Virus record (IMG/VR): IMGVR_UViG_3300027985_000918
Span: 124,001 to 188,000 of that record
Direction: 5' to 3' (one strand)
DNA length: 64,000 nucleotides
Shown: piece after piece, positions 12,861 to 43,956 of the stretch
Numbering within the stretch: the first letter of the stretch is position 1
Layout: the number at the start of each line of letters is the position of its first letter
Translations under genes and position numbers: made by a program
The notes under the pieces: model-generated
What the model was told of the DNA's origin: nothing
Databases searched by the model: none
What the model saw: the letters and a program-made list of their open reading frames with translations, nothing else

Positions 12861-13499
12861 ATGATCGGATTCACTCCGCCTATCTATGAGGAAGTCATCC
12901 CGGGGGTTAGGATGGCCGTGTTCACGGTCTCGGATACCCCTGGAAGTCAGTACGTCTACCGGAACAGGGATATCCAGTGGTTCCGGGAGTTGCTGTCCCT
13001 GTACGCTGACAACCCGAGACTGTCTCCCCTTCGGGGAGATGTGCATGTCACCAACTACCACGGGCTAGGGCCTCTCCGGGAGCACATGAGGTCCGTTGAA
13101 TCCCTAGCCCGTTGGTGGATCGGCCAAAAAGACGTGTACCCTTTCAGTTCTACGGGAGAAGGGGCCCTTATCCGAGTGGCCAAGAAGCGGCGCACATGGA
13201 GGATGCCGGGAGATCTGTTCGTGTTCGTGATGATCCTGGGATCGTCGTTGGCGACCGGAAAGTGGGGGTACAAGCCCTGCCCTCTCTACTCGTACTGGTA
13301 TCACGGGTTCCCCAGGAAGAACCGGAGGCGCCGCAAGTGGGAAGTGCGGCAGAGAGAGGAATGGGCCTACAAGGGGTGGGCCGCTCGTTTGGGCCGTGAG
13401 CCTCCTTGGCCCTACGAAACGGATCTCTACCGCAACGTGTACTCTCCCCTCACCGAGGAACACCGACAGTTCCGGCTGTTGTTGGAGAATGAAGTATGA
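12861..13499 (+). CDS. Hypothetical protein
   Basis: Open frame coupled (ATGA) to the next gene. Confidence 0.55.
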   Translation: MIGFTPPIYEEVIPGVRMAVFTVSDTPGSQYVYRNRDIQWFRELLSLYADNPRLSPLRGDVHVTNYHGLGPLREHMRSVESLARWWIGQKDVYPFSSTGEGALIRVAKKRRTWRMPGDLFVFVMILGSSLATGKWGYKPCPLYSYWYHGFPRKNRRRRKWEVRQREEWAYKGWAARLGREPPWPYETDLYRNVYSPLTEEHRQFRLLLENEV

Positions 13500-13966
13500 G
13501 GCTCTGGTCTGTACACCCTGAAAACCTAGACAAAGCAGGACTCGGCGCCGCCTGGCGTGAGGGGCTGCTTGCCCAGAATGTGCTGTCCCGACTGGCTGCG
13601 GGGGAGCAAAGGGTGGGTTACCAAAACCACTCCCAGCTCGAACGGTTCAAGCGTCTTCCAGATCCTTTGCAGGGAATCTGTGACTGGCTCTGGGGGGTTC
13701 AGCGGGAGGCGGCGGGGCGAGGCTACAAGTACAACCCCAGTCTGATCGTGAGGCCCCCACAAGGCATTCGGATGAAGGTCACCCAGGGGCAACTCAGCTA
13801 CGAATTGGGCTGGCTGAGAAGGAAGCTGGAAAAGCGGGACCCTGGCCGAATCCCATCGCTAGTCAGTACCCCTCACCCGATGTTCGATTTGGTCGAAGGG
13901 GTAGTGGCCTCTTGGGAGAAGGTGTCCTCTGAGAGGGACAAGGATCCGGTGAGGGGTGCTGACTAG
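13496..13966 (+). CDS. Pyrimidine dimer DNA glycosylase / endonuclease V family
   Basis: MRLWSVHPENLDKAGLGAAWREGLLAQNVL...GYQNHSQLERF...EAAGRGYKY family signature. Confidence 0.85.
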   Translation: MRLWSVHPENLDKAGLGAAWREGLLAQNVLSRLAAGEQRVGYQNHSQLERFKRLPDPLQGICDWLWGVQREAAGRGYKYNPSLIVRPPQGIRMKVTQGQLSYELGWLRRKLEKRDPGRIPSLVSTPHPMFDLVEGVVASWEKVSSERDKDPVRGAD

Positions 13967-14943
13967 TCGAGGAAATTCTCGGCCTCCCTCCACCGGATCT
14001 CCGTGCAGCCGTCCTCCTTGAGGTGGTGGAGGGGCAGGATGCCATCCACCCGGCTCCCCGGCTTAGCGATCTGGCAGTGGGCGATGATCCCCTTCACGTT
14101 GGTCACCGGGTCCCCCGCCCCCAACCCACCAACCCGAAACGTCCTCCAATCCTCACAAGCCGTCAGCTCGATTCCTCGCAGCTCACAGTACCAGGGCAGG
14201 AACAGCTTCAGAGCTTCCCTCTGCTCCGGAGTCATCGACCAGCACTTCACCGTACCGTACTTCCTCTTCAGCGGGGGGACGCCGTCGTCCTTTCGGCCAA
14301 TTGCCATCTGGAGAGTCAGCTTCTCCTGACCCGGGGCTGGCGTGACGTTCCAGGAGAAGGGCCCGGCGATGTCGAGGCTGTCCGACTGCGAGTTGTGGTG
14401 GACGCAGTGGATGCCGTGGCGAAGACCCGGATCGAAGTGCTGGTAGATGGACCCATCCGTATCCATCGTGAACGTGGTCGAGCACCCTTTGGCATCGAGT
14501 ACCCTCTCCGTAGCATGGGCCAGAGACTTCTCGGACTTCATCTTCCTCTCCGCCCCACGGTGGAGGACCATCTGAATGGGCTGGCCCACTCGATTGCCGG
14601 TGTCATTCTTCTGGGAGGGGGCACCGTCGGGCTCCAGGTAGTTGATGACAGTGACCCCTGGAGGGGGCTGGAAAAAAACTCCGTTGATGATGACGCACCC
14701 CTTCGAGGTTTTGTCGCCATGCTTGACCTCGGCATGGTCATCAACCGGAGAATTGGCATTCTTGCGTGCCCACGCCTTCCACAGCTTGATGGACTTGGGC
14801 CCGAACCAGCCGTCCACCTCAGCACCGATCTTGGTCTGAAGGGGTTTGACCTCATCGGGTTCCCAGGAGCTGAGTCCGAGGTCGGAGAGGGAGAGGTTTG
14901 CCTGGGTGGCATACTTCTTGGAGTAGAGAGCCGACTGGGTCAT
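13963..14943 (-). CDS. Endolysin: peptidoglycan-binding domain plus N-acetylmuramoyl-L-alanine amidase (Amidase_2)
   Basis: LQTKIGAEVDGWFGPKS (PG binding); VLHRGA, DTDGSIYQ, HNSQS, IIAHCQI (Zn amidase). Confidence 0.8.
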   Translation of the reverse strand: MTQSALYSKKYATQANLSLSDLGLSSWEPDEVKPLQTKIGAEVDGWFGPKSIKLWKAWARKNANSPVDDHAEVKHGDKTSKGCVIINGVFFQPPPGVTVINYLEPDGAPSQKNDTGNRVGQPIQMVLHRGAERKMKSEKSLAHATERVLDAKGCSTTFTMDTDGSIYQHFDPGLRHGIHCVHHNSQSDSLDIAGPFSWNVTPAPGQEKLTLQMAIGRKDDGVPPLKRKYGTVKCWSMTPEQREALKLFLPWYCELRGIELTACEDWRTFRVGGLGAGDPVTNVKGIIAHCQIAKPGSRVDGILPLHHLKEDGCTEIRWREAENFLD

Positions 14944-14988
14944 AATGGAGCCTCCGCACATGTGGTTGCGGAGGCACTCTACCGGGTC

Positions 14989-25853: not shown

Positions 25854-27683
25854 TCAGGTGAGCCAGTCGAACTCGACCACGTAGCGGATTCGCTGGTAGT
25901 CGGGGGAGAAGATGATGTGCTCATCGTTCTCTAGCCCGTGCCCGTTATCTCCACCGACCCCGAAGACCGAGTCGGACTGGACCTGGGCCCCGCCACACTG
26001 ACAGGTCGTGGCCCCACCCCGGTTACCGTAGGAGCGGTAGGTGCCCTGCATGTTGTTCGGGCGGTGGCACTTGACACAGCTCTGGGGAGGGCTGCTCCAG
26101 GAGCCCGTCGAAGGCGCCCGGTAGGCATGCCCCATGATCATGTCCGTGACGAACATGAAACATCCCCGGTTCTGGACCCCGCCCCCACCCCCGCCGCTGT
26201 AGTAGCCTCGCCCCGTGTAGCCGTAGCTCTTCCGCCAGTCGGTGGCGAAGTAGATACCGTGTCCGAAATTGGCCCCGGTGATCTGGGCTCCCGGCAAGCT
26301 CTGAGGGAGCCGGAAATTAGTCCCCATGATGGGGGCGATGTTGACCGGGCGGGTGCCGTGGATGCTCAGGATGACGTTCGCCTGGGCGTACTCATCGGAG
26401 AGACCCGCCAGGTCGGTCCGGCGAGGTTGGAGATTGCCCCGGAGGGAGAACTTACCCTGGACACGGGCACCAACCCTTTGAACTTCCGCCAGGAAGCGGG
26501 CGTCTCGATCGGGACGTTCCACAGCAAACAGAGAACGGACCTTGGGAGACTTGGATCCCATGTAACCGTGCCGGTTGTTGCTCATGTGGACGAAAGCATC
26601 CCAGAGCCACTTCCCCTCGGTCCCGTTCGGATCGATCCAGCGGAGCTGAGCGTTCAGCAGGGAATCCGGATCGATGGACTGGACCGGAGTTGTCGTCGTG
26701 AAGTCCTCGGTCGTCAGAGCGGTCTCGAAGGCGTCGAGGTCCGCCTGGAGGGACAGGAGGTTGCCTGAGTTCAGGATGGCCTGCTCGTCGGTCCATCCCG
26801 TCCGGGGGATAGGACGGGGAACCAGACTGTTGACCGTGGTCGAGATGGTCCGCAGAGCGGAGTCCTTGACCTGGGCGGCCACCAGGGCATCGTTGTCCCG
26901 GAAGTTGGTGCCCACGGCGGCCAGTCGCTGAAGGGCCGCCGGGATGAGCTGGTCTCGAACCTTCGAGATGGCCCGCATGGTCGGAGTCACACCGCTGGCC
27001 TGGGACAGGGAGCGGGTGTACGTCTGGGTGCCGCCGACGAGGTCCCTGGCGAGTTGGACGACCTCGGGCTGCCACGACTTCAGAGACTTGACCACAGCGG
27101 GGGCGGCCGTCTTGACCGGCGTGGGAGCAGGCATGGCGACCCCGGACCCGTCTTTGACGGTCAGCACGTCGGGGAGCCCCTTCTCACGAGTTGCTAGGTC
27201 CTGGATGAGATAGCCGTCTTTGCCAGCCTTGGCACACCACAGGTCGATGCCCCCGATGCTCTTGCACTCCAGACGGGCCAGGTTCTTGTCTCGGACCTGC
27301 CCAGCGAACCAGGAACGGGCCTGGTCGAGGGTGGCCCCCACGGTGAACTGGAAATCCTGGTAGGCCCCCGTCCAGGAGCCGTGCTCCCAGCTCTTCCCCG
27401 GACGGGAACGACCCCACTCGAAGTAGGCGTGGTACTGGCCCGTCTTCTTGTCCCGCACCACCCCGGCGTGGTAGCCCTTGGCGTTGTTCGCTTCCCCGAA
27501 CTGGTTGACGCACACCATGTCCACGAGCCCGATGTCGGGGTTGGGCATGGAACCGTTCAGGTACCCATTTTCGTCGATGGCGGGCTTTCCGACGTACTCG
27601 AAGTCGTCAGGAGAGCAGCCTGCGGGGAGCTGGCGCTTGCCCAACTTGTCGTTGGTCCCAGGTTTCTTGACGGCGATGGTCAT
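25854..27683 (-). CDS. PARP1-like ADP-ribosyltransferase (WGR + PARP regulatory + catalytic domains)
   Basis: NNAKGY...YFEWGRS (WGR); PEVVQL...NSLVPR (regulatory); IHGTR, FGHGIYFA..RKSYGY, NDEHIIF (H-Y-E triad). Confidence 0.88.
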   Translation of the reverse strand: MTIAVKKPGTNDKLGKRQLPAGCSPDDFEYVGKPAIDENGYLNGSMPNPDIGLVDMVCVNQFGEANNAKGYHAGVVRDKKTGQYHAYFEWGRSRPGKSWEHGSWTGAYQDFQFTVGATLDQARSWFAGQVRDKNLARLECKSIGGIDLWCAKAGKDGYLIQDLATREKGLPDVLTVKDGSGVAMPAPTPVKTAAPAVVKSLKSWQPEVVQLARDLVGGTQTYTRSLSQASGVTPTMRAISKVRDQLIPAALQRLAAVGTNFRDNDALVAAQVKDSALRTISTTVNSLVPRPIPRTGWTDEQAILNSGNLLSLQADLDAFETALTTEDFTTTTPVQSIDPDSLLNAQLRWIDPNGTEGKWLWDAFVHMSNNRHGYMGSKSPKVRSLFAVERPDRDARFLAEVQRVGARVQGKFSLRGNLQPRRTDLAGLSDEYAQANVILSIHGTRPVNIAPIMGTNFRLPQSLPGAQITGANFGHGIYFATDWRKSYGYTGRGYYSGGGGGGVQNRGCFMFVTDMIMGHAYRAPSTGSWSSPPQSCVKCHRPNNMQGTYRSYGNRGGATTCQCGGAQVQSDSVFGVGGDNGHGLENDEHIIFSPDYQRIRYVVEFDWLT

Positions 27684-27716
27684 ATAGTAGGTCCTCACAT
27701 TCAGTCTCAGAAAGGG

Positions 27717-30810: not shown

Positions 30811-31599
30811 TCAGAGGGTCTTGGCGGCGTTCACGTACTCCGCATCGGTGACCGAATCCTCCTCGATCCTTTGCCTCAAGGCGAGGAGGGAGGCCATCGG
30901 CTGAGGCTCGACGGGAATAGCGGCCACCATGTCGAATTCGGCGGCGAACTCCGACAGGGCATCCTGTTCCAGAACTTCGTGCTCGACCTCGGACATCACC
31001 CAGGCGTTGCCGGAGTTGGCCTCGGCGGCGACTCGGGTGCGGCCCTGGGCGTTGGTGATCTGCTCGTTGAGGCTCTTCTCCAGGTCGGAGAGCCCCTGCC
31101 CGTCCGGGTTGAACGTCAGCTCGGAAGCCATCTCCGAGAGCTTGGCCTGGGCGTTTGCCATTTCCGCCTGGGAGATCTTGCCCCTGACCGTTTCGATCTT
31201 CGTCATCGACTGCTTGACGAAGATGTCCCTCTGACGGGTGAGCTGCTGGAACTGCTCTTCGGCGGCCTGGAGCTGGCGCTCGTTCTCGGTGATGTTGGCC
31301 TGTACCATCTTGCGTTGGCCGGCGAGTTGGCCGGCAAGGGTGGCTTTGCCAGCCTTCATGAGGGCCTTGATTCGGATTACGAGTTGGGCTTCTTTGGCCC
31401 GATCGTCCTGAAGCTGAAGCTCCAGGCGGCGGCGGAAGGCATCCTGTTTCGCCAGATTCTGGTTGAACGTCGCCTGGTTCTTCTGAAACTCCTGGATGTG
31501 CGCATCCAGAAGGGCCTTCGGGTTCGACTTCTCGATCCCGCCGATGAACAGGCCGAGGAACCCTCGGATGAGTCGCATGATGCGTCGGAAGAAACTCAT
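30811..31599 (-). CDS. pspA: PspA/IM30 (ESCRT-III-like) family protein
   Basis: Amphipathic MSFFRRIMRLIRG, ExxNPKALL, long coiled coil, LAGQL, AQAKL...F. Confidence 0.8.
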   Translation of the reverse strand: MSFFRRIMRLIRGFLGLFIGGIEKSNPKALLDAHIQEFQKNQATFNQNLAKQDAFRRRLELQLQDDRAKEAQLVIRIKALMKAGKATLAGQLAGQRKMVQANITENERQLQAAEEQFQQLTRQRDIFVKQSMTKIETVRGKISQAEMANAQAKLSEMASELTFNPDGQGLSDLEKSLNEQITNAQGRTRVAAEANSGNAWVMSEVEHEVLEQDALSEFAAEFDMVAAIPVEPQPMASLLALRQRIEEDSVTDAEYVNAAKTL

Positions 31600-31696: not shown

Positions 31697-34318
31697 CTAC
31701 CAGCCGTCGGAACCACCGAAGCTGCCACCGCCCCCGCCGAAGCTGCTGGAGCTGCCCCAGGAGCTACCCCCGCCGAAGCTGCTGGTGCTGCCCCAGGAGC
31801 TGCCTCCTCCGAAGCTGCTGGTGCTGCTGTGGTACCTGGACCGGCGGCGACGGTCCTCTTCTTCCTGCCGCCGCCGACGGTGCCGGGCCTCCTCCTCCCG
31901 GCGGCGCTCTTCCTCCCGGCGGAGGCGGGCTTGCTCTTCCTCGTACCTCTGCCGGGCGGTGCGAACCAGGCGGTCCCACCCCTTCTCCTGGGAATCGAGG
32001 GACAGCAGGAGAGCAGCGTAGTCCACCAGACCCCGGCCGACGAGGGGTGCCTGGTAGCTGAGGTTGGCAGTTCCCCCGAATTCCCGGATCTTGTGGGCCT
32101 TGCTGGACCGCAGGGACTCCATCTGGCTCAGCTTCTTCTCGAAGGCAGCCTTGCGGCGGTCGAGGGTCTTGCAGTGGGCGCTTGCATCGTTGAAAGAGGC
32201 CTTGGCCTTCTCCCAGGACCGCTGGGCGTCGGAGAACAGCCGGCAGGCGTCCAGGTGCCGGTTGGCGGCCACAGCCTCCTCGGCGGAGGTAAACTCGATG
32301 GAAGCCCCAGACTGGGCGATTTCACCGGCCTCGATGTTCCGGTTGGCTTGGAGCATGTCCGTGTGGACCTGACGGGCGGAAGACACCGCCAAGTTGGCGG
32401 CTCGGAAAGCCAGGGCTGCGTTTTGACGTGCGTCCTCAGCACCCTTGCGAGCAGCGGCGATGCCACGGACGGCGGCCTGAATCTCAGCCACCTGCCCCCG
32501 CACCTTGCGATACAGGGTCTCTACCCTGTCGGCTTGTACCTGAAGGGCCTTGATGTCCTTGCTGGAGGCGGCTGTCTGGAGCATCGCTTGGAAGCGGTCT
32601 TCAGCACTCATGGCGGTGTCGAGGGTGACCTTCGGATCGTTCTTCGGGTCCACCCTGGTGTCGATGTCCTCGTACTGCGTGACCCGGGACTTCTCCACTC
32701 TCTGGATGATCTCGGAGACTTCCTGGATGCGAGCCAGGATGGCGGTCTCCATCTCGGCCAGCTCTTCCAGCCGCTTCAGGTAGGCCAGAGGATCCGCCCA
32801 GCGGACGGAGTTGATCGTCTGGTAGAAGGCGGCATCGGACTCGTCGTCTCCGTAGAGGGGGTGGTCATCCACCCAGGTGTTGGGCATACCAGCCGCCTCG
32901 CACATCTTGAACAGACGATCCATCGTGCGGTGCGGGAAGGCCTTCTCTGCTTCCTGCATCCGTGCCTCGGCGGCCCGCTTAAGAGTGTCCCAGCCCTCCT
33001 TGGCTTTCCGGAACGTATTCGCCTGCTCGGCGGCGAACTTGATTGGGTCCACGGTGATCTTGACGGTTTCCCCGCCGAACAAGTCGGACGAGTTGACTTC
33101 TGCGGTGTCCATCGAGAAAGGCTCGGCAAGGGCGGCCAAGGCATCCCGCAGAGGCTGAACCTTGAAGAAAGTGGCAGTCCTGCCTAGTTCCTCACAGCGG
33201 CGGACGTGCCGTTCCAACCCAAGGATGTTCATGTAGATGGTGTCGATGGAGGAAGTGACCCAGTCGTACAACTTGCGGGTCTCCCCCACTACGTCATCGA
33301 AGGCGACCAAGTCCTCACGGTCTTTGAAATGGAATTCGGTGTACTTGGCCTGAGCATGGGACAGCTTCTCGTCCCACTCCCTGAGTGCCGTCTCCAGGTT
33401 TTCCCGAAGCACGGTGAACAGGACAAAGCGGCGGTAGAGCAGCCGCAACAGGAACCCAAGGACAATTGGAAAAGCCAGGATCGCCAAAGTCAGCAGCAAG
33501 ATTTTGAGGATCAGAGCAAACTGGGCCTGCTGAACGGAGAGCCGCAATGGCTCCATGCTGGTGTTCAGCTCCTGGGTGGCCTGGATAAGGGTGTCGGGGT
33601 CCGTAGAGTCTTTCACCGCCAGGGCCTGCTGGTAGGCGGCCTCGTAGGCCCCCACTCCCGTCGAAGGGTGATGTTGACGGGCGGCCAGCAGGCCTTGGGC
33701 CTTCCCGAGCATCTCCAGATAGTTTGTTTGAGCGGCCCGGAATTTTCGGGCAGCGATCTGCACAGGGTCAATCTGCGGCCAGACCCGGGAGATAGCGGCC
33801 CGGAGGGTGTTGATGATTCCCCCCTTCAAATCCTGGGGGCTCTTCGCCACCTTCGGGATGAAGTATGCCTTCCGGTCAGAACTCTGGGTGGAATGGGGGT
33901 ACACGGCCCCCAACGTCTCCGGCATGGAGAATCCCACCTGGCAGAAATCTTTGCCCGAACGCCGGTAAAACGGCTTTCTGTCGCAGTCCGAGGACCAAGC
34001 CACGGTCAGGATCAGGAACCGCTCGGAGTCCAAACCCTGGCTGGCCCACTTGGTGGCGAACCCGTCCCCGAGGATGTGAGGCTCGATGCGGTAACCGTCC
34101 GAGTTGACCAGCACGACATAGCTGGGGATCGGCAGGGTGCGGGCGAACTCCTCTACGGCTTGGGCCTGGGGGATCCCAAACCCTGTGGGGAAGAACCCCT
34201 CCGGCGAGCTGTAGACGTGAACGCCCTGTTGGAACTCCGGGGTCGCCGGGGCCGCTTGGGCGAGGGGTGTGGCAGCCAATACGGCCAAGGCTAGGAAGCT
34301 CCGGATGAACCGTTTCAT
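31697..34318 (-). CDS. Secreted TPM-like domain + TM helix + long coiled coil + Gly/Ser-rich tail ending GW
   Basis: Signal peptide ALAVLAATPLAQA; TM ALILKILLLTLAILAFPIVLGFLL; tail GGGSSWGSTSSFGG...GGSDGW typical of TPM (DUF477) proteins. Confidence 0.65.
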   Translation of the reverse strand: MKRFIRSFLALAVLAATPLAQAAPATPEFQQGVHVYSSPEGFFPTGFGIPQAQAVEEFARTLPIPSYVVLVNSDGYRIEPHILGDGFATKWASQGLDSERFLILTVAWSSDCDRKPFYRRSGKDFCQVGFSMPETLGAVYPHSTQSSDRKAYFIPKVAKSPQDLKGGIINTLRAAISRVWPQIDPVQIAARKFRAAQTNYLEMLGKAQGLLAARQHHPSTGVGAYEAAYQQALAVKDSTDPDTLIQATQELNTSMEPLRLSVQQAQFALILKILLLTLAILAFPIVLGFLLRLLYRRFVLFTVLRENLETALREWDEKLSHAQAKYTEFHFKDREDLVAFDDVVGETRKLYDWVTSSIDTIYMNILGLERHVRRCEELGRTATFFKVQPLRDALAALAEPFSMDTAEVNSSDLFGGETVKITVDPIKFAAEQANTFRKAKEGWDTLKRAAEARMQEAEKAFPHRTMDRLFKMCEAAGMPNTWVDDHPLYGDDESDAAFYQTINSVRWADPLAYLKRLEELAEMETAILARIQEVSEIIQRVEKSRVTQYEDIDTRVDPKNDPKVTLDTAMSAEDRFQAMLQTAASSKDIKALQVQADRVETLYRKVRGQVAEIQAAVRGIAAARKGAEDARQNAALAFRAANLAVSSARQVHTDMLQANRNIEAGEIAQSGASIEFTSAEEAVAANRHLDACRLFSDAQRSWEKAKASFNDASAHCKTLDRRKAAFEKKLSQMESLRSSKAHKIREFGGTANLSYQAPLVGRGLVDYAALLLSLDSQEKGWDRLVRTARQRYEEEQARLRREEERRREEEARHRRRRQEEEDRRRRSRYHSSTSSFGGGSSWGSTSSFGGGSSWGSSSSFGGGGGSFGGSDGW
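31737..31827. repeat. 36-bp tandem repeat (2.5 copies) encoding GGGSSWGS(T/S)SSF
   Basis: CCGAAGCTGCTGG(A/T)GCTGCCCCAGGAGCT at 31737 and 31773; partial copy at 31809. Confidence 0.85.
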
Positions 34319-34358
34319 GATGCTTTCGTCCTTCGTTGAAGGGTAGTTCTCGGCCCCT

Positions 34359-34385
34359 CTACCCCAAAATAGATGTGCTGTTACC
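34359..34385 (-). promoter_or_regulatory. Phage promoter motif upstream of the TPM gene
   Basis: GGTAAC-N15-GGGTAG. Confidence 0.7.
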
Positions 34386-34402
34386 TACTTGACGGAACGC
34401 AG

Positions 34403-34477
34403 TGCGCCCGGGGGGACTCGAACCCCCGCATCACCAAGTTTTAGAGACTCGGGCTCTAACCTCTGAGCTACGGGCGC
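34403..34477 (-). tRNA. tRNA with anticodon CUA (amber suppressor type); CCA not encoded
   Basis: Acceptor GCGCCCG/CGGGCGC, D stem GCTC/GAGC, anticodon stem CGAGT/ACTTG with loop CT-CTA-AA (anticodon 34444-34442), T stem GGGGG/CCCCC with TTCGAGT, discriminator A. Confidence 0.9.
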
Positions 34478-34515
34478 ATACTGGGGCCTCGTGGCCCCGT
34501 CGTTGTTCGGGGGGA

Positions 34516-34542
34516 CTACTTCGGCACCCTCCTGCTGTTACC
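34516..34542 (-). promoter_or_regulatory. Phage promoter motif upstream of tRNA(CUA)
   Basis: GGTAAC-N15-AAGTAG. Confidence 0.7.
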
Positions 34543-34656
34543 AGGCTTTCATCGAAAAGCCCTAACTAACCGAACAGGAAAGGTTATTCAATTTCCCGGG
34601 GGGTGCCTATGTAGAGGAGAGCCAACCAAAACTGGCGGCTGAGAGGGGAAAAGAGA

Positions 34657-35085
34657 TCAGGTGGGCTCTAGGCGGGGGAGTAGCACCACTCCCCCCCAGT
34701 ACCTCTTCATGGTGCGGAGGGCCGCCTCAGACAGAGGTTTCGCCACGTAGCTGTTCGCTCCCCCCTGATACCCTCGAAGGATGTCCGTATCGGACTTGCT
34801 GGCCGTCATGACGACCACGGGGATATGGCTCAACAGAGGGTCCTTGCGGATCTGGGCAAGAGCCTCATGTCCCCCCATCCTTGGCATCTTCAAATCCAGT
34901 AGGATCATGTCGGGCAGGGTTTTAGAGGGGTCCCTCAGCCTCTCCAGCAATTCCACTCCATCCTTGACCCTCTCCAGCTTGTTCGGACTCTGGCACTCGT
35001 CGAAGCTGTCAGCTATGAGCATCCAGTCTTCATCGTCATCTTCGGCAAAAAGAAGCAGCGGGTTGCGTTTTGAAGCTGTGAGCAT
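34657..35085 (-). CDS. Single-domain response regulator (Rcp1-like)
   Basis: FAEDD, PDMILLDLKMP, VVMTAS, GANSYVAKP. Confidence 0.9.
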   Translation of the reverse strand: MLTASKRNPLLLFAEDDDEDWMLIADSFDECQSPNKLERVKDGVELLERLRDPSKTLPDMILLDLKMPRMGGHEALAQIRKDPLLSHIPVVVMTASKSDTDILRGYQGGANSYVAKPLSEAALRTMKRYWGGVVLLPRLEPT

Positions 35086-35089
35086 GGGA

Positions 35090-36253
35090 TCAATCCACCT
35101 TTCTCTTTGGGAGGCCAACGTGGAACGTGGCCCCTTCTCCGGGCATAGCCTCGCAGTCGATCCAGCCTTGGTGACGATCTAGAATCTTCTTCACCAGTGC
35201 CAGACCGATGCCCGTGCCCGGATAGTCAAACCGGGTGTGAAGCCTCTCGAAGAGCTGGAACACCTTGTCTTTGAATGCCATGTCGAACCCGATCCCGTTG
35301 TCCGACACTGAAATCACCCAGTCCTCGTCGGTCTCCTGGGCGGTGAACTGGATCAAGGGCACCCTGTCGGGGTGCCGGAACTTGATGCTGTTGCTGATCA
35401 GGTTCTGAAGCACGGTCCGCATCTGGTAGCGGTCTGCCCAGACGGTAGGTAGGTCCTGTGCCAAAACCCGGGCATTGGCCTGTTCGATGGGGATGGCCAG
35501 GTCTTCCAGAATGCTGCGGAGGATCTTGTTGAGGTCCACTGCCTCAAAGGGGTCTTCCAGCCTCCCCACCCGGCTGTAGGACAGGAGGTCATCCATCAAC
35601 GACTGCATGCGCTCCGTGGCGTTCAACATCACGTCGATATATGACTGCCCCTTGTCGTCCAGCACTTCGGCGTACTTCTCCTTGAGCCTTTGGCCGAAGG
35701 CCCTCACTTTGAGCAGGGGTTCTCGGAGGTCATGGCTGGCAGCGTAAGCGAACTGACGTAGCTCATCGTTGGACAGTTGAAGCTCTTCCGTCCGGGCCCT
35801 CACTAGAGCTTCCAAATCCTGGACATTCCCTCGATGCTCCGTCACATCCCGTACCAGGACTAGGCACTCGTCCTCATGACTGCGGGCGAACCGAGCCTCG
35901 AACACGGAATTAGGATGATTGGGGACCTTGAACTCCCAGGTGATTACCTCTCCAGTGTCCATCGCTTGGAGGGCTTTATGCAGGGTGGCGTTTGCGAATT
36001 CCGGCCTGCCTACATCGAGAACCCGCCGGCCGATAACGTTCTGGTGATCCGCCAAGGGGGAGGCATTCAGCCCCGGCGCCATGTCGGCATAGAACCCTTC
36101 TCGGGTGATGATGCAGATCAGGTCGGGAGAGGCAATGCGGAGGGCATCCAGACGACCGGGATCATTGACTCGGCCGTAAGAGGGATCCTGCTGGCACCGA
36201 TTCAGAAACGGACAGCTCTTGCCCTGCAGGCACCAGTCGGGAGAACTGGACAT
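35090..36253 (-). CDS. PAS-domain sensor histidine kinase (Cph1/BphP-type transmitter)
   Basis: FAYAASHDLREPL (H box), QNLISNSIKF (N), SDNGIGF (G1), FQLFERLH (F), GTGIGLA (G2). Confidence 0.92.
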   Translation of the reverse strand: MSSSPDWCLQGKSCPFLNRCQQDPSYGRVNDPGRLDALRIASPDLICIITREGFYADMAPGLNASPLADHQNVIGRRVLDVGRPEFANATLHKALQAMDTGEVITWEFKVPNHPNSVFEARFARSHEDECLVLVRDVTEHRGNVQDLEALVRARTEELQLSNDELRQFAYAASHDLREPLLKVRAFGQRLKEKYAEVLDDKGQSYIDVMLNATERMQSLMDDLLSYSRVGRLEDPFEAVDLNKILRSILEDLAIPIEQANARVLAQDLPTVWADRYQMRTVLQNLISNSIKFRHPDRVPLIQFTAQETDEDWVISVSDNGIGFDMAFKDKVFQLFERLHTRFDYPGTGIGLALVKKILDRHQGWIDCEAMPGEGATFHVGLPKRKVD

Positions 36254-36257
36254 GCCC

Positions 36258-37013
36258 TCACCCTACACTCTTGAGCGCCCGGATGGCTTCGACATCCACC
36301 ACCTGGACCAGGAGGGTTAGAAGAACCACGATGGTGATCAAACCCAGGAACAACATAACCGAAGCGACAGGGTGCAATGTGACCCATTCGGCCGTGTCCC
36401 GGACCCTATCCCAAGGGGTCTTCTTGATATTCTTGAGGATCTCTTCCTTTTGCTGGTCCAGCTTGACATCCAAGCGGCCGAACCCCTCTTTGAACTCGGA
36501 CCTCAGCTCACTTAGCTGAAAGGCAGTGCTGGTCTGAGCGGACGCACCCTCTCGGGTAAGGGATACTAGCTCCTGAACCTGGAGACCCACCCCTCCTGAT
36601 TCCGAGCCGTTTCGGATCTGCCTCTCATGTAGCCCGATGGCGTACAGGCAGGTCCGCTCCAGGAGGTCAGACGAGAAAGTCCCCTTCTCCAAGAATTCCG
36701 CCACCCCCGCCTCCAGAGCTTCATCCTGGAGACGGCGGTCCCCGTGGCTGGTGATAAGCACCACGGGGATGTGAAAATGCAGTCGCACCATCTCGGACAG
36801 CAGATCCATTCCGGACTGGTCGGGGAGACGATAGTCAAGGAGCATCACGTCGTAGCGGTGCTTCTTGACCTTCTCCAGGGCGGCGGCGGCGGTTTCGACG
36901 GCATCCACGCCAAACTTGGCCCGCTTGGAGTCATCGAGCAGGTCGATGACCAGCCGGGCGTCGTCCCGGTCGTCCTCAACCAACAGCACTCGAACAGTTG
37001 CGGGCGGGGGCAT
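36258..37013 (-). CDS. Receiver (REC) domain fused to coiled coil and C-terminal TM anchor
   Basis: LLVEDD, LLDYRLP, LITS, FLEKG; C-terminal VASVMLFLGLITIVVLLTLLVQV. Confidence 0.85.
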   Translation of the reverse strand: MPPPATVRVLLVEDDRDDARLVIDLLDDSKRAKFGVDAVETAAAALEKVKKHRYDVMLLDYRLPDQSGMDLLSEMVRLHFHIPVVLITSHGDRRLQDEALEAGVAEFLEKGTFSSDLLERTCLYAIGLHERQIRNGSESGGVGLQVQELVSLTREGASAQTSTAFQLSELRSEFKEGFGRLDVKLDQQKEEILKNIKKTPWDRVRDTAEWVTLHPVASVMLFLGLITIVVLLTLLVQVVDVEAIRALKSVG

Positions 37014-37160
37014 GTCTCGAACCTCCAAAAACAGCAGGACCCTCCTAAGTTGGGGCCGCTACCACGTATGGATTATCGAGCATCTACCATTCTCGGGGCC
37101 GACTTCACGATAGTGGTCCCTAGTCCCCCATCTTCTGGCCAGTGTTGTGATCCCTCACAG

Positions 37161-37553
37161 CTATTTCCGCAGCACGAGATCGAGAGATTCCTCAGTCAGA
37201 TCATCTCTACAGACAAGGTTCTGAAGCTCTCGACAGAGCCGGCGCCACCAATAGATGCGATCCCGATCCCCATAATCGCACATCCCCACGTCAATACGGG
37301 GGGACCCTTTCCGGCGTTTCCTGCAGTTGCAGTACCATACGGTACTCTTTTTGAGGCGACCGGGCTCTTCTGCCCGGAAGTTGGTCCCGTAGGCCACCCG
37401 AGTCCAGTCCCGTACTCGGCGTTCACAGATGCGAAGGGTGGCAGCCCTCCGGGCTGCTCTCTTTGATGTCTCTTCCATTGTTCTTCTCCGCATGCGGGCG
37501 CTACCCGCCCGGGTATGTTGGGATGCGGGGAGAGGGGTGAAGATGCTGGTCAT
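37161..37553 (-). CDS. Basic hypothetical protein
   Basis: Arg-rich ORF with CNC/C residues. Confidence 0.5.
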   Translation of the reverse strand: MTSIFTPLPASQHTRAGSARMRRRTMEETSKRAARRAATLRICERRVRDWTRVAYGTNFRAEEPGRLKKSTVWYCNCRKRRKGSPRIDVGMCDYGDRDRIYWWRRLCRELQNLVCRDDLTEESLDLVLRK

Positions 37554-37574
37554 GGACTTCTCTGTTCGGGTCAG

Positions 37575-37814
37575 TCAGCCGTTGGTCTCCAGGAGGGAGA
37601 TCAAGCCCGCCTTGTTCAGTTTGGAGTAGCCGGAGAGACCCTTGTCTCTGGCGGTGGCCTTCAGCTCTGGCATGGTCATTGACTCGAACCCGCCGTCCAC
37701 AGGCTTCGCCTTGGGCTTGGGGGGAGGGCCGATCGGAAGCTGGATGCCTGGACGTTCGGATCCGGGCCGCTGCTCCCGCCTGAGTTGTTCAAGATGTTCA
37801 GTCACCCAACACAT
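37575..37814 (-). CDS. Small protein with Rho_N-like nucleic-acid-binding motif
   Basis: MTMPELKATARDKGLSGYSKLNKAGLISLL. Confidence 0.7.
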   Translation of the reverse strand: MCWVTEHLEQLRREQRPGSERPGIQLPIGPPPKPKAKPVDGGFESMTMPELKATARDKGLSGYSKLNKAGLISLLETNG

Positions 37815-37845
37815 AGGGAATGCTCCTTTGCCGGTTCTTCCGCAT

Positions 37846-39574: not shown

Positions 39575-39823
39575 ATGAACACGGAAACCACCCGTGGTGG
39601 CCTCCACCAGCCTGGCGTAGGAGTTCGATTACTTATGGCTTCCAAGTGGCCCCTTCAGATCAAAGTCGGCAAGACCCGGTTCAAGATCATGCACCCGGAA
39701 CAGGGTCGGCACCAGATCATCAACACCAAGACAGGTGAGGTGGTGGGACATCTGGTAGAGCACCAGGTGCCGTTCAACGGACTCAAGGTCGCAGCCCGGG
39801 AAGTCATCGAGCAGGTCGCATGA
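39575..39823 (+). CDS. Hypothetical protein
   Basis: Promoter motif plus conserved leader. Confidence 0.65.
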   Translation: MNTETTRGGLHQPGVGVRLLMASKWPLQIKVGKTRFKIMHPEQGRHQIINTKTGEVVGHLVEHQVPFNGLKVAAREVIEQVA

Positions 39824-40287
39824 TGGGCATCGAGATCGAACGCAAATATCTCGTTGCCGACGACGGCTGGAAGCAGGAGCACGTCATCTCCCACCAGTCC
39901 ATTCGCCAGGGGTTCCTGTCCACGGACCCACTGCGGGTGGTCCGGGTGAGAGTTACCGAAGACCAGGGGTTCTTGACCGTCAAAGGGGCGGGCCATCTGT
40001 CCCGCCCCGAATACGAGTACGAGATCCCCACTGAGGATGCTGAAGCTCTCCTTCTGCTCTGCAAAGGGAAGATCATCCAGAAGACCCGCTGGACGCTGGT
40101 TTTCTCCGGCCGACACTGGGAGGTGGACGTATTCGAGGGCCAGCACGCAGGACTGGTCCTGGCTGAGACCGAAATGAAGGTCGAGAACGAGATCTTCAAG
40201 GTCCCTTCCTGGGCGGATCTGGATGTTACGATGTACCCCAGATACAAGAACATGAACCTCGCCTTGGAAGGGGAAGACATCCCATGA
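39820..40287 (+). CDS. CYTH / triphosphate tunnel metalloenzyme
   Basis: EIERKYLV, IRQGFL, VRVRV, LTVKG, EYEYEIP, KTR, WEVDVF, LAETE. Confidence 0.9.
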   Translation: MMGIEIERKYLVADDGWKQEHVISHQSIRQGFLSTDPLRVVRVRVTEDQGFLTVKGAGHLSRPEYEYEIPTEDAEALLLLCKGKIIQKTRWTLVFSGRHWEVDVFEGQHAGLVLAETEMKVENEIFKVPSWADLDVTMYPRYKNMNLALEGEDIP

Positions 40288-41096
40288 GCTTGACCATCAT
40301 CTCTCTCGGTCATGGAGGGGGCGTTCCTGTCTTCCCCTACGGGACCGCCGGCAACACCAACTTCGCTCTGGTCCCTGGGCGGCACGAAGGACCCGTGGTG
40401 GGCATCCTCCGGTCCAACCCCTACTGGCTCATCGACTGCGGGCCGGAAACCTTGATGAGGATCGCAGGGACGGGACAGATCCCGGAACCCATGGTTCAGA
40501 ACCTCCAGGGGGTCATTGTCACTCACTGCCATGGGGATCATTCTGGGGGGCTCTACGGTCTGGCTTGGAGGACTCACTTCATCGAAGAGAGGAAGGTCAA
40601 CCTGGTCTACCGGGAAGAGCTGATCCCGTTTTTGGAGGATCAGCTCATCGAGATCCAGTACCTGTCCGGAGACACCCCTCGGGTGCCCTGGACCTACTAC
40701 TGGGAGACCGTCGCCTGTTCTCCCACCCGGATATGGATGGACCTAGGGGATTTCAAGATCTGCTTTTTCAAGGTGGACCACAACATCCCCGGTTTTCCCA
40801 GCTTCGGAGTCGAGGTGCAGACCGTAGAGGGGGGCAGAGCTGTCTTCAGTGGAGACAGCGCCCACCCCATCGACGCCCACCGCTTCAGTGGTGCCGACGT
40901 GGTGTTCCACGATGTGCAGTTCTACACGAGCGACCCGAGGGTAGCCGTACACTGCCCATACGAGGCCCTGGAAACCGCTGTGAGCCCCGAGTTGCGGAAA
41001 AAGGTACACCTGGCCCATACCGGCCAGAAGCCGCCGGGGGCGGCCTTAGAGGCGTTCTCCTGGGCTTCTCTTGATACGATCGTAGTGGTGGATTAG
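40284..41096 (+). CDS. MBL-fold metallohydrolase resembling Apyc1 cyclic-nucleotide phosphodiesterases
   Basis: LIDCG, THCHGDHSGG, VDH, FSGDS, VFHDVQF, VHCPYEAL, VHLAHTG. Confidence 0.8.
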   Translation: MSLTIISLGHGGGVPVFPYGTAGNTNFALVPGRHEGPVVGILRSNPYWLIDCGPETLMRIAGTGQIPEPMVQNLQGVIVTHCHGDHSGGLYGLAWRTHFIEERKVNLVYREELIPFLEDQLIEIQYLSGDTPRVPWTYYWETVACSPTRIWMDLGDFKICFFKVDHNIPGFPSFGVEVQTVEGGRAVFSGDSAHPIDAHRFSGADVVFHDVQFYTSDPRVAVHCPYEALETAVSPELRKKVHLAHTGQKPPGAALEAFSWASLDTIVVVD

Positions 41097-42682
41097 CGGG
41101 AGGAACCCGAACGGCTATTGCTGTCGGTGGTGAGGCGCCGGCTCAGAAGGTACGTGTCGGTGTCGTGCTTGTCCGACAGGTCCTCCAAGAAGTTGATCAT
41201 TCCGACCGTGAGCACATCGAGGCGTTCACCAAGGTCCAGCACCTGCTTGATGTTCCCCTTGAAATCCTGCTCAGCAGCCAACGCCTGATCGAAATTGTCC
41301 CCAGGAATCTCATCCCACTGCTTGATCCAAAACGCCGTCCACATGGCCTGCTGCTTGGGATCCACAGCATCGACACCGTACATGTCCACCAGCTTCTCAG
41401 CCAGGCCGTCGATCTGATCGTCCATCGCCTCATACAGGCGCTGGAACAGGAGATGATCCCCGTAGTAGCCCGTCCCCGAAGCGGTCCAGTGGCAGTTGAG
41501 AATGAAGTCACGAAGGGCTCGGAGCTGACTCAGGAGGCGCATCAAAGCCAACTGGGCTGAGGCTTTGCCAGCGGCATCGGCCTTTTTTCCCGCTGCTGGG
41601 GGAACTACCTGAGTGATTCGACCGTCATTTGTCCCTACCCACAAAGGGACTTGGTGCAGAGCGGGAATGCTGGAATGCAGGTTCCTCCGTCCGACAAGCC
41701 CCTTGAAAGCCCGCAGGCCAAACCGGGTGGCCTGCCCTGAAGAAATGTCAGCGTAGATGAACCACGCCTTGTGTGGCTGGACGTAACGGAACTTGTGCTG
41801 GGCCAACTCAATGACTTTGTTGTCTTTCATCATGGAGGGGGCCAGCTCCCGAATCTGGGACATCCCGAACTTGCGCTCGAACTCCGCTAGCGCTTTCATC
41901 TCTGGGGTCTCTTCGGGCTCTGGTCCCACATCGTCGAACAAAGTGAACCCATCCAGCATGGCCCTCTTCCCTACCGGCTCGACCACCCAGTCGTCCACAT
42001 CATCGAACCTATCGAGCTGGGGGCGAACCATCGTTGCCGCCTTGTTGTCGGCGTCCTTGTCGTCCCGAGCCGTGAATTCCTTGGACCATAGCTCCTCCCC
42101 TGAGTCACTGAACAGGTAGACTCGGTACTTCCCGCCCGCCGCCGCCTGCTTGGACACCCATTTTGAAGCCAGGGAGTAGACGTAGCTCTCCACCTCATCG
42201 GTGGAAACCCCTGCCTTGTCCGCCAAGCCGTGAACCTTCGAGTCAGGCACGGCTTTCCCCCCATACTCCCTCAGGAGGGCGTGGAGCTGATCCTTCAGAT
42301 CCTTAGGGATGGCGGCCTTCTTGTCGCACTTGCCGGCCTCCATCCTCTCCAGCTTATCGTAGTAGGCCGGATCTTCGGTGAGGTGGTCCCGAGCAATCTC
42401 CCGAGCAAGGGATGGATCATCCGTGTGCTCCATCTCGACCTTCTGCCCCTTGGCAACAGCTTTGGGATCGAAGTCGGAGGGCTTCTTTTTGTCAGAGAGT
42501 CCGCCAGGAATCTGGTCCTTAGCCGTTTTGAACTCGTGGGAAGGTTTCATCTTCTTGTAGATCCCCATCACATAGGCGTAGAAATCCTTGTCGGACTCTT
42601 TGCGGCCGTCATCCTTGGCAATTTCCACCGCTTTGGTCCACTTCTCTTCATCACGCCTCGTGTGGACCACGTTGCTGGGCAT
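41093..42682 (-). CDS. Multidomain phage protein: ChaB-like N-terminus, DUF5661-like module, C-terminal ferritin/Dps-like four-helix bundle
   Basis: GQKVEMEHTDD..LAREIARDHLTEDPAYYDKL; HWTASG...HLLFQRLYEAMDDQIDGLAEK. Confidence 0.6.
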   Translation of the reverse strand: MPSNVVHTRRDEEKWTKAVEIAKDDGRKESDKDFYAYVMGIYKKMKPSHEFKTAKDQIPGGLSDKKKPSDFDPKAVAKGQKVEMEHTDDPSLAREIARDHLTEDPAYYDKLERMEAGKCDKKAAIPKDLKDQLHALLREYGGKAVPDSKVHGLADKAGVSTDEVESYVYSLASKWVSKQAAAGGKYRVYLFSDSGEELWSKEFTARDDKDADNKAATMVRPQLDRFDDVDDWVVEPVGKRAMLDGFTLFDDVGPEPEETPEMKALAEFERKFGMSQIRELAPSMMKDNKVIELAQHKFRYVQPHKAWFIYADISSGQATRFGLRAFKGLVGRRNLHSSIPALHQVPLWVGTNDGRITQVVPPAAGKKADAAGKASAQLALMRLLSQLRALRDFILNCHWTASGTGYYGDHLLFQRLYEAMDDQIDGLAEKLVDMYGVDAVDPKQQAMWTAFWIKQWDEIPGDNFDQALAAEQDFKGNIKQVLDLGERLDVLTVGMINFLEDLSDKHDTDTYLLSRRLTTDSNSRSGSSR

Positions 42683-43956
42683 TAGCGGATCTCCTTGTAT
42701 GTGAGGGTCGACAGGGCCTCTCCGGACCCCGTCACCAATCGGGCACACACCCACAACTCATCGGGCGTACCGTCATAGGCCGAAACCACAGGCACAGATT
42801 CGATTAGAGTACCCGAAACAGCATTGCCACGGGACTGAGCTCCCCCCCCAAGCACCCCGGAGCTGAGAACTAGAGAGCGGGCCCCATTGGGCAATCCGCT
42901 CCCGTTTACCCCCACCGCAATCTGGCTGCGGCTGTACTGGGCAATGGAATCCGCCCCTGGGACATCTGCCCAGACGGCAGCTCCTGTCCCACCGGGATTT
43001 AGCACCAAGCACCACAACAGGGCTTCGGTGTCCAGGTTGATGAAGCTATGCTCCAGAGCCCGGAGAGTGGCGTGGATGTTGGCGGCTTGAAGCCGGATAC
43101 CTAGAATGGTGGTGAGAGTGGTACTGGTCGCAGCCAACCCCGTTCCAGAGTCGGGCTGAGACCAAACCGATCGTTGGGCGCCAGGCTCATCCACGGCACC
43201 TTCCCGGTTTACTGCCGAACAGATCTGCATCAACTCTGTGGGGCCCGCAGTGGCCCCGGTGTTCTCGATTTCGTAGCGGACGGGGAGCTTCGGGGAACGG
43301 ATGTAGGGGAGAGTGTTCCCCCCCTGGTTGGCATGCTTGAACTCATGGACGTAGATGATCATCCCGTCGATGTCGAAGCCCATACGGACTCGCCCAACCC
43401 CCAACCATTGGAAATCGCACACCCAAATCTGGGTCTTGGTTAGATCCAGGGTGATACCGCTAGGCCCGGTTCCGTCAAGGGGATCCATGTTCCAGGAAGA
43501 CTGAGGGATGCGTTCGTAGGTGGTGGCCCCGGAGGCAACGGACCGGATGACCATTTCAGGGTCATCGTTATCCCTCACCTCCAAATACATCCCTTCGGCC
43601 CCATTGAAGTAGCCAACCTTCTGAGTCATATTGGCCTGGGGAGGCGCCATCAAAAAAGTGGCTAGGACAAGCTGACCCTGGGCTGCACGGTAAGAATAGA
43701 ATTCTTTGGACTGTCGGACTACACGGTCTCCGGCTGCCGCCGTCACTGCCAACCGCATGGTTCCCGAGCTAGGATGATATGTAGCCGTTCCGGCCCCCGC
43801 CACAGTGCCGTCCCAATACAGAGTACGATCTGCCGTGTCAAACAACGTCGAGAACTGGAGATGAGGATAGCTAACCCTCACCCGACTGAACGGGTCCAGG
43901 TTGGGGCCGTCAGAAATACCCACGTCCTCGGGGAAAGTGCTACCGGGATAACTCAT
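42682..43956 (-). CDS. Probable virion structural protein (beta-rich, lectin/LamG-like)
   Basis: Ala/Gly/Thr-rich and beta-strand-rich; late-type cluster; inference only. Confidence 0.5.
   Translation of the reverse strand: MSYPGSTFPEDVGISDGPNLDPFSRVRVSYPHLQFSTLFDTADRTLYWDGTVAGAGTATYHPSSGTMRLAVTAAAGDRVVRQSKEFYSYRAAQGQLVLATFLMAPPQANMTQKVGYFNGAEGMYLEVRDNDDPEMVIRSVASGATTYERIPQSSWNMDPLDGTGPSGITLDLTKTQIWVCDFQWLGVGRVRMGFDIDGMIIYVHEFKHANQGGNTLPYIRSPKLPVRYEIENTGATAGPTELMQICSAVNREGAVDEPGAQRSVWSQPDSGTGLAATSTTLTTILGIRLQAANIHATLRALEHSFINLDTEALLWCLVLNPGGTGAAVWADVPGADSIAQYSRSQIAVGVNGSGLPNGARSLVLSSGVLGGGAQSRGNAVSGTLIESVPVVSAYDGTPDELWVCARLVTGSGEALSTLTYKEIR

Follow-up and report, generated by a model that had tools for sequence, protein, structure and literature searches.

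At positions 34657-37013 of a 64,000-nucleotide (nt) stretch of viral DNA (hereinafter the window), which comprises bases 124001-188000 of the 402,383-bp contig IMGVR_UViG_3300027985_000918 in the IMG/VR database, three tightly packed genes on the minus strand encode a complete two-component signal transduction system. A preliminary description of the window had recognized here a membrane-anchored receiver (REC) protein with a coiled coil and a transmembrane (TM) segment, followed by a PAS-HisKA-HATPase kinase and a single REC protein, and this gene layout stands in full, with coordinates that equal the true ATG starts. The lead gene encodes a REC domain, a helical stalk and one C-terminal TM segment (hereinafter REC-TM); it is followed by the gene for the histidine kinase and then by that for the small receiver (Table 1). 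The open reading frames (ORFs) at these positions are 36258-37028, 35090-36253 and 34657-35118, all on the minus strand; the longest ORFs begin at TTG codons, and the sequence offers better starts. REC-TM starts with the ATG at 37013, preceded by a GGAGG sequence 8 nt upstream, and the database gene model P0001 likewise has 251 amino acids (aa); the ATG of the kinase (36253) lies 4 nt past the REC-TM stop codon, and that of the small receiver (35085) lies 4 nt past the kinase stop codon. Given this 4-nt packing, the genes appear to constitute one translationally coupled operon. The GC content of third codon positions (GC3) in the three genes, 0.71-0.75, is of the coding type. As the preliminary description had stated, none of the three proteins contains a DNA-binding domain detectable with Pfam or NCBIfam; regarding an ECF-type promoter, a sigma-70 scan and inspection by eye, the only approaches applied to the region upstream of the operon, found nothing.

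Table 1. Features of the operon and of other parts of the window (window coordinates)
Feature	Position	Strand	Basis or remark
Lead gene (REC-TM): REC, helical stalk, single C-terminal TM	36258..37013	-	251 aa, stop codon in coordinates; Pfam, gene model P0001
REC domain, residues ~5-125	36639..37001	-	pLDDT >93, active-site quintet
C-terminal membrane module, residues 127-251	36261..36635	-	alignments A3/A4, hhalign, tblastn
Predicted TM helix, residues 215-238	36300..36371	-	AlphaFold2 model, hydropathy
Soluble sensor histidine kinase, 387 aa: N-terminal Cys-containing stretch, PAS_4, HisKA, HATPase_c	35090..36253	-	Pfam, motifs
Single-domain response regulator, 142 aa, Rcp1/RcpA-like	34657..35085	-	Pfam, PDB matches
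tRNA, CUA anticodon (amber suppressor type)	34402..34477	-	ARAGORN; downstream of operon, outside conserved cassette
873-aa ORF	31697..34318	-	upstream of PspA gene
PspA/IM30	30811..31599	-	PF04012 43.8 bits, cut-off 33.9, residues 4-214 of 262 aa
Candidate endolysin, 332 aa, divergent PG-binding-like N-terminus and Amidase_2	13963..14961	-	Pfam, PHROG, BLASTP
Accessory-region genes: PARP; CYTH/metallo-beta-lactamase; ferritin-like; DenV-type	25854..27698; 39820..41096; 41093..42754; 13496..13966	-; +; -; +

The N-terminal portion of REC-TM is a readily recognizable receiver (Pfam Response_reg, E-value 1e-21, residues 14-124). Of its active-site residues, D14, D60, T88 and K110 show no variation in an alignment of 34 homologues (alignment A1), and at least 90% of these sequences retain D15. 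Both receivers of the operon belong to the classical variety, with Response_reg scores of 70-77 bits, and the cREC profile yields 23 bits, for the lead protein only, at a cut-off of 27. The AlphaFold2 model obtained with the family alignment has a mean predicted local distance difference test score (pLDDT) of 85, rising above 93 in the REC domain. In this model, the last helix of the REC domain continues to residue 139 and is followed by a long helix predicted with low confidence (residues 145-196), a short helix (200-213), a hydrophobic helix (215-238) and a short terminal helix. The C-terminal hydrophobic segment is the single one in the protein, with a 19-residue Kyte-Doolittle peak of 2.87, and is present in 34 of the 34 family members (peaks of 2.6-3.6). 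Basic residues precede the TM segment and acidic or neutral ones follow it, a distribution suggestive of a tail-anchored protein with N-in/C-out topology. Prediction of a homodimer of the lead protein returned a score of 0.02, a value that counts neither for nor against dimerization. The best match among solved structures is the REC domain with the adjacent linker of the dual-sensor histidine kinase 6oap (profile positions 6-173, E-value 4e-21); this protein resembles REC-TM in combining an N-terminal REC domain with a long helical linker and differs from it in that its output is a soluble sensor/kinase, with no membrane tail. By analogy, the match suggests that the signal could travel through a continuous helix.

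The kinase shows highly significant similarity to the two catalytic families (HisKA, E-value 4e-12, 46.3 bits at a cut-off of 26.9; HATPase_c, 3.5e-22, 79.4 bits), with PAS_4 (2e-5) as the only sensor domain and no TM segment. Its catalytic motifs are invariant in 15 orthologues (alignment A2), namely the H-box histidine H174 within an SHDLREP motif, the N-box residues N284 and N288, the G1 residues D318, G320 and G322, and the G2 residues G346, G348 and G350. The structural neighbours of the kinase core in the PDB are 8f71 and the kinase modules of bacteriophytochromes (E-values around 1e-28), and the core is 45-50% identical to many cellular kinases. A separate feature of this protein is the presence of three cysteines within 13 positions in residues 1-25, ahead of the PAS domain; several orthologues contain other cysteine clusters, either N-terminal or inserted in the PAS region (alignment A2), and such clusters may be metal or redox sites. 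The small receiver (Response_reg, E-value 2e-19) contains, as read from its sequence, E15-D16-D17, D64, T94 and K116, so that the phospho-sites of the entire system are intact, as the preliminary description had claimed. The label "Rcp1-like" also proved apt, given that the best PDB matches of the small receiver are the phytochrome response regulators 6xvu, 5te9, 8avv, RcpA, RcpB and Rcp1 (E-values from 1e-14 to 8e-21). A single HATPase_c domain and exactly two REC domains are encoded in the 402-kb genome, and the operon accounts for all three; as the genome offers no alternative kinase or receiver and the genes are separated by gaps of 4 nt, it appears probable that the kinase transfers phosphoryl groups to both receivers.

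The operon belongs to a real huge phage, and the contig is not chimeric at this locus. The record is classified in IMG/VR as having direct terminal repeats, and the contig ends overlap. Among selected ORFs at 342-355 kb of the contig, matches to PHROGs include the large terminase subunit TerL (5.5e-28), the portal protein (1.4e-25) and the prohead protease (5.6e-13); these hallmarks came from the PHROG comparison, and Pfam searches of the genome with Terminase_6N and Phage_capsid produced no match. With a length above 200 kb, terminal repeats, terminase, portal and a head-maturation gene, this is a huge (jumbo/mega) tailed phage, and its genome encodes 30 tRNAs. Its TerL shares 54% identity with the TerL of LR745208.1, an uncultured phage of 485 kb, and 56% with the TerL of an IMG/VR phage of 435,804 bp that has terminal repeats and also the cassette. 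The source sample is a hydrothermal vent metagenome, and in the Logan assembly of the same sample, the region 33000-38900 of the window is recovered in one piece with zero differences; this is a separate assembly of what is probably the source sample, and hence does not represent an independent sample. The GC content is uniform across the window. A cellular or chimeric contig, which the preliminary description had recognized as a possible pitfall, is incompatible with the phage hallmarks, the uniform composition, the continuous assembly and the occurrence of the cassette in the 436-kb relative. Genetic code 11 was applied throughout. As a technical aside, a loxP-like adaptor sequence found on loose ends of small contigs in run X3 (window positions 33158, 36952 and 37370) is a mate-pair library artefact.

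The same gene order, REC-TM, kinase and REC, recurs in six other loci, of which four are IMG/VR contigs (L010-L013), one is a 531-kb contig (L099) and one is a Tara Oceans marine contig (L101), with L100 and L102 being second contigs that carry the L099 and L101 proteins, respectively. Several of these loci are on contigs of 120-530 kb; the contigs range from 45 to 64% GC and derive from marine and vent samples. The genes of the cassette abut or overlap, and the sensor portion of the kinase varies, with PAS alone, GAF combined with PAS, or an extra N-terminal extension. A word-indexed search with the lead protein among 5.8 billion proteins retrieved 34 homologues that match it over the full length (249-287 aa, 36-62% identical), several of them on contigs of 266-531 kb; below these, the E-values jump from 4e-38 to 1e-19, and the remaining matches include the REC domain only. 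No full-length homologue was detected in 185,579 prokaryotic species genomes (GTDB representatives, one each), where the best 80 matches are REC-only similarities to long multidomain proteins, or in 50,697 GenBank phage records, LR745208.1 included. The family is rare, with about 45 clusters at 50% identity among 1.84 billion representatives, and is confined to phage-like contigs. There is no consistently conserved neighbour of the cassette across the loci. Side by side with this variation, one can mention a WGR-domain protein of about 355 aa encoded directly upstream of the lead gene in two loci (L012, 6928-8001; L013, 6921-7976).

In an unrooted maximum-likelihood tree of the kinase core in the 120 best matches, 13 of the 13 cassette-linked kinases (linked to the cassettes by matching the sizes of the contigs) fall on one side of a branch with a Shimodaira-Hasegawa-like approximate likelihood ratio test (SH-aLRT) value of 98, together with 38 unnamed metagenomic sequences (51 rows altogether), and every kinase that carries the name of a cellular organism is on the opposite side. 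This topology, which addresses the comparison with host kinases advocated in the preliminary description, fits a single acquisition of the kinase followed by diversification within these phages. Taking these observations together, we hold that a conserved phage two-component system with a tail-anchored receiver is very probably real.

What is the provenance of the membrane tail? Its layout consists of a conserved helix with an LTRE-type motif, a variable coiled coil, an invariant tryptophan, the TM segment and a short outer helix with a conserved aspartate. Profile databases are silent on this module: three family tails have no Pfam match at E-values up to 5, and the family has no PHROG and no PADLOC system match, the latter giving weak partial REC matches only; NCBIfam yields domain-level matches only, and a search of the ESM Atlas with the tail from the window returned only generic helical look-alikes with TM scores below 0.5. 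When the 1.84 billion representatives were searched exhaustively with a profile of the tail only (alignment A3), 70 proteins had E-values of 1e-3 or lower, 38 of them 1e-10 or lower. Nearly all of the 70 are proteins of 217-294 aa with a REC domain of the family type in front and a C-terminal TM segment. Three REC-less tails that are encoded beside a kinase were rejected as independent forms, one being a frameshifted gene (P0223 in L107), another being cut by the contig end (P0226 in L106) and the third following a scaffold gap of N (P0243 in L108), and the contexts of P0212 and P0238 are uninformative.

There remain four genuine, small stand-alone relatives of the tail, 120-153 aa in length (P0211, P0213, P0214 and P0260). 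The similarity is highly significant, with an hhalign probability of 99.5% (E-value 2e-23 over 121 columns) and pairwise tblastn E-values from 1e-7 to 3e-16, and the stand-alone proteins align across the whole length of the tail at about 30% identity (alignment A4). Four features are held in common, the LT-x-x-SV-x-AQ helix, an E-x-x-ELR-x-D motif, the invariant tryptophan in front of the TM segment, and a Q-x-x-(D/N) ending that is followed by a short amphipathic helix. The genomic position of these genes is telling: those for P0211 (L103), P0213 (L104) and P0260 (L111) are located directly 5' of, or overlap by one base with, a gene for a PG_binding_1-Amidase_2 endolysin. These endolysins match PHROG endolysin families (best, phrog_1493, E-value 5e-20), and two of the loci, L104 and L111, also carry phage replication genes. 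The gene for P0214 (L105) abuts a cut gene that begins with the same endolysin N-terminus, in agreement with this arrangement, and in a second contig with P0260 (L112), the downstream gene is cut, with 41 residues left. On this homology, the lead protein is best described as a fusion between a receiver and one of a small family of phage membrane proteins whose free-standing members occupy the classical position of holins. This directly supports the preliminary description, which had likened the tail to a small phage membrane protein or holin-like module. The opposite outcome it had envisaged, a tail that is an ordinary anchor widespread in bacteria, did not materialize, inasmuch as none of the 80 closest REC-bearing ORFs in the species genomes combines REC with a C-terminal TM segment and the exhaustive profile search finds the tail only in the rare lead-protein family and in a few small phage proteins.

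In three of the seven cassette loci, an endolysin is encoded within 1.3-5 kb of the cassette. In L013, an endolysin homologue on the strand of the cassette is located 1.3 kb upstream of it, separated by a single WGR-domain gene; in L101, a homologue is found 3.4 kb upstream of the cassette, and in the L012 contig, about 5 kb downstream. In the window, the candidate endolysin is a divergent protein (Amidase_2, E-value 6e-5, 23.8 bits at a cut-off of 26; phrog_1493, E-value 0.006) that is similar to the L013 endolysin (BLASTP E-value 5e-8); scans of the genome with the Lysozyme, SLT and Amidase_2 families were empty, and the amidase was detected only via its homology to the L104 and L013 endolysins. 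The N-terminus of the candidate endolysin contains no signal or signal-arrest-release (SAR) segment and there is no adjoining small TM ORF, so that the holin must be encoded elsewhere. The association between cassettes and endolysins is not uniform across the loci, and we regard it as suggestive. As a further observation on this part of the window, the region 13963-15960 (minus strand) resembles a lysis region: ahead of the amidase comes an ORF of 323 aa that has a signal of the lipoprotein type, with a lipobox-like L-I-G-C, and a Glu-Ser motif like that of lytic transglycosylases.

So what could be the function of a receiver joined to such a module? The most far-reaching reading is that REC-TM would be a phosphorylation-gated holin or antiholin that evolved by fusion of a receiver to a pre-existing lysis-cassette protein, with the kinase reading the physiological state of the infected cell and setting the moment of permeabilization; we assign this reading a rough probability of 0.35. 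The scheme that we favour is a self-contained phage phosphorelay with a membrane-based, non-transcriptional output, in which phosphotransfer, the topology of the tail, conformational coupling, the consequences of phosphorylation and the connection with lysis are inferred. The soluble PAS kinase would sense an intracellular cue in the infected cell, autophosphorylate on H174 and pass the phosphoryl group to the two receivers encoded on either side. Phosphorylation of D60 would send a signal along the continuous alpha-5 helix and the stalk, altering the packing of the latter, and the membrane module would be switched between inactive and active states via self-association or binding of a partner, resulting in hole formation or its inhibition. 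The time of membrane permeabilization, and with it the access of the endolysin to the cell wall, would be set by the sensed cue. The small Rcp1-like receiver would most likely act as a competing phosphate sink or as a second, protein-protein output, and in that way set a threshold. As for this lysis-gating mechanism, the chances that it operates seem to us evenly balanced. The role in lysis control is proposed because of the gene neighbourhood of the tail's relatives, and the homology of the tail supports, without proving, phosphorylation-gated control of lysis. The concept of a phage sensing circuit with a membrane output, put forward in the preliminary description, is supported in its core; control of lysis timing by the circuit is a possibility suggested by gene neighbourhood.

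Several observations weigh against a role of REC-TM in lysis. All stand-alone forms belong to a single low-GC lineage of phages, only distantly related to the one analysed here, and their own role in lysis is deduced from position only. The stand-alone cassettes also encode a protein of 61-67 aa with an N-terminal hydrophobic segment (L104, 4550-4735; L103, 455-658), and given this other small hydrophobic protein, the module could be an antiholin or a lysis accessory. The module lies outside every known holin family in Pfam and PHROGs (the tails were compared with both and the stand-alone proteins with PHROGs), and holins do not typically reach 251 aa or include a folded cytoplasmic domain. 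In the window, the REC-TM gene and the candidate endolysin are 21 kb apart, not adjacent in the manner of a holin gene and its endolysin, and in L010, L011 and L099, no endolysin was found near the cassette. Finally, none of the RNA runs contains the locus. Apart from these points, a conserved soluble protein of 59-74 aa is encoded immediately upstream in the stand-alone cassettes; this protein or that of 61-67 aa could also have a part in lysis, perhaps as the true holin or as a regulator.

Comparison with known systems helps to separate the familiar from the new. The phytochrome pairs (Cph1-Rcp1, Deinococcus BphP-BphR and RcpA/RcpB) are the systems to which the small receiver and the kinase core are most similar in sequence, and they share with the present system an output that is not a DNA-binding domain. 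The bilin-binding PAS-GAF-PHY photosensory core of phytochromes, however, is not found here, where PAS_4 is the sole sensor domain; some of the orthologues add GAF but none adds PHY. Also unlike the phytochrome pairs, the present system is encoded by a phage and a second, membrane-anchored receiver leads the operon. The XhlA-type accessory proteins of the PBSX lysis cassette consist of a coiled coil and a C-terminal TM segment, and are similar to the tail module in overall layout and in the association with a cassette that includes an Amidase_2 endolysin, but common ancestry is not supported by sequence: neither XhlA (PF10779) nor any other Pfam family is listed for three family tails at E-values up to 5, or for P0212 and P0215 at the thresholds applied. 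The four stand-alone proteins were scanned against PHROGs only and P0213 also against PADLOC.

The class III single-TM holins and pinholins, such as gpT of phage T4 and gp63 of phage N4, have in common with REC-TM one TM segment, an N-in/C-out topology (predicted, in the case of REC-TM) and a soluble region. For N4 gp63, lysis timing is regulated through a conserved stretch adjoining the TM segment, and in both T4 and N4, the single-TM holins are regulated by protein partners (PMC12642591). The term "Receiver domain" as applied to N4 gp63 was coined ad hoc and does not denote a REC fold. Compared to the class III holins, REC-TM has no family match, its bulk is N-terminal and cytoplasmic, and the control proposed for it is aspartyl phosphorylation by a dedicated kinase. 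Another parallel is LytSR, which governs the bacterial holin-like cid/lrg genes transcriptionally, via a LytTR DNA-binding regulator (PMC3507848); the circuit proposed here would likewise place a holin-like membrane function under a two-component system, but in the phage system, receiver and membrane module are parts of one protein and there is no DNA-binding domain. The cREC domains of jumbo phages, also receiver folds in very large phages, are described as never associated with histidine kinases and as linked to NAD/ADP-ribose systems (Iyer et al. 2021, PMC7824862), whereas the receivers described here are classical and flank a kinase. The literature that we searched mentions neither phage receivers anchored in the membrane nor fusions of a receiver with a lysis-cassette protein, and equally no holin that a dedicated kinase regulates through aspartyl phosphorylation. 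As to its signalling core, the system is an ordinary HisKA one whose sequences are of the phytochrome/Rcp1 type; the output is without a described counterpart. What is new here is the homology of the tail to lysis-cassette proteins; two-component systems and lysis membrane proteins are known kinds, and the system offers a credible route to a new mode of lysis control.

Two-component systems are the main sensing device of bacteria, but phages seldom have a complete, classical one. In the clade of very large phages described here, a private kinase and two receivers have been kept with their catalytic residues intact, and their output is a membrane module related to endolysin-cassette proteins rather than a transcription factor or an enzyme. 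The known controls of lysis timing are holin concentration, dual-start antiholins and periplasmic antiholins. If the link to lysis is true, the present system would provide a new way of setting the lysis clock, namely aspartyl phosphorylation driven by an intracellular signal, and would represent direct, post-translational two-component control of phage lysis timing. It would further define a new output class for response regulators and serve as a compact, three-gene example of a virus that senses the state of its host. Furthermore, the fusion is a hint of the "Rosetta stone" type that gives functional context to an unannotated family of small phage membrane proteins.

Could the same observations be accommodated by other scenarios? 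The foremost alternative is that the receiver is tethered to the inner membrane as a localization or scaffold device with no role in lysis, its phosphorylated form modulating a host or phage membrane process such as those related to the proton motive force, transport, envelope stress or membrane remodelling, perhaps together with the 873-aa protein and PspA. The presence in this phage of a PspA/IM30 gene and of a gene for a large single-TM protein near the cassette is compatible with such a role, as is the distance to the candidate endolysin; furthermore, the conserved residues at both ends of the TM segment along with the short outer helix are suggestive of a specific partner rather than bulk hole formation. 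Nonetheless, the linkage to PspA and the 873-aa protein is missing at all other cassette loci, the tail is a conserved module of 125 residues with full-length homology to endolysin-cassette proteins, and a mere anchor would have no need of the conserved cytoplasmic helix. We therefore deem this alternative unlikely, without considering it negligible.

Another scenario casts the operon as a conflict system involved in superinfection exclusion, abortive killing or anti-defence, such that the kinase senses a competitor or a host defence and REC-TM depolarizes the membrane. Single-TM effectors are common in defence systems; the accessory region in which the cassette lies is rich in conflict-type genes, including those for PARP-like, CYTH and ferritin-like proteins and a metallo-beta-lactamase fold with a weak similarity to Apyc1; and in other loci, GmrSD and an antitoxin are encoded near the cassette. 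Against this scenario, PADLOC identifies no system beyond the weak partial REC matches mentioned above, the flanks of the cassette are not conserved, and the only functional context tied to the module is the endolysin cassette, so that we find it improbable. Finally, the idea of a recently captured host two-component system with no role in the phage, or of an assembly chimera, which could draw on the predominantly cellular distribution of two-component systems and the similarity of the kinase core to cellular kinases, is already largely refuted and hardly credible in view of the same gene order in phage contigs of disparate composition and habitat, the segregation of the phage kinases from the named cellular ones, the lack of full-length cellular homologues of the lead protein, the catalytic residues that are intact and conserved throughout the family, the uniform GC and the continuity of the second assembly.

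The preliminary description had laid stress on the neighbours of the operon, a tRNA(CUA), a TPM domain protein and PspA. The tRNA and PspA are indeed present but TPM could not be confirmed: the 873-aa ORF has no match of any kind in Pfam (E-values up to 5, whether its first 273 aa or the rest was compared), PHROGs, NCBIfam or PDB sequences. In the 873-aa protein, a signal-like N-terminus and one TM segment near residues 262-296 are followed by a cytoplasmic part that is long and helical, and the C-terminal tail consists of Gly/Ser/Trp-rich repeats. For the other cassette loci, the comparison covered the 873-aa protein and PspA and included no tRNA scan; no counterparts of these two proteins were found near the other cassettes, and the stress on these neighbours is not supported, the linkage being particular to this phage. 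The tRNA(CUA), called tRNA-Pyl by ARAGORN, stands alone, far from the tRNA clusters at 9-14 kb and 46-57 kb. Recoding of TAG by this tRNA was considered and dropped: TAG ends 84 of the 363 called genes, all three stop codons terminate genes, the candidates for in-frame TAG are antisense frames or adjoining genes in the same frame, and the translation of the sole frame with multiple TAG codons is low-complexity nonsense.

Directly upstream of the operon, there is an ORF for a basic, cysteine-containing protein of 130 aa (37161-37553, minus strand) with a weak coding signal and no family match; its homologues, with 34-36% identity, are present in L010 and L011, 6-7 kb from the cassette and on the opposite strand. 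Another ORF (37575-37883, minus strand; 102 aa) contains a C-terminal Rho_N/SAP-like motif (Pfam E-value 3e-5, slightly below the cut-off). The accessory region further encodes a protein with a PARP catalytic domain, a CYTH protein followed by the metallo-beta-lactamase-fold protein with the weak Apyc1-like match, and a DenV-type pyrimidine-dimer glycosylase. It also encodes a DUF5661 plus ferritin-like protein, which is found near the cassette in L010 and L012 as well; a ferritin-like gene is located within about 7 kb of the cassette in three loci.

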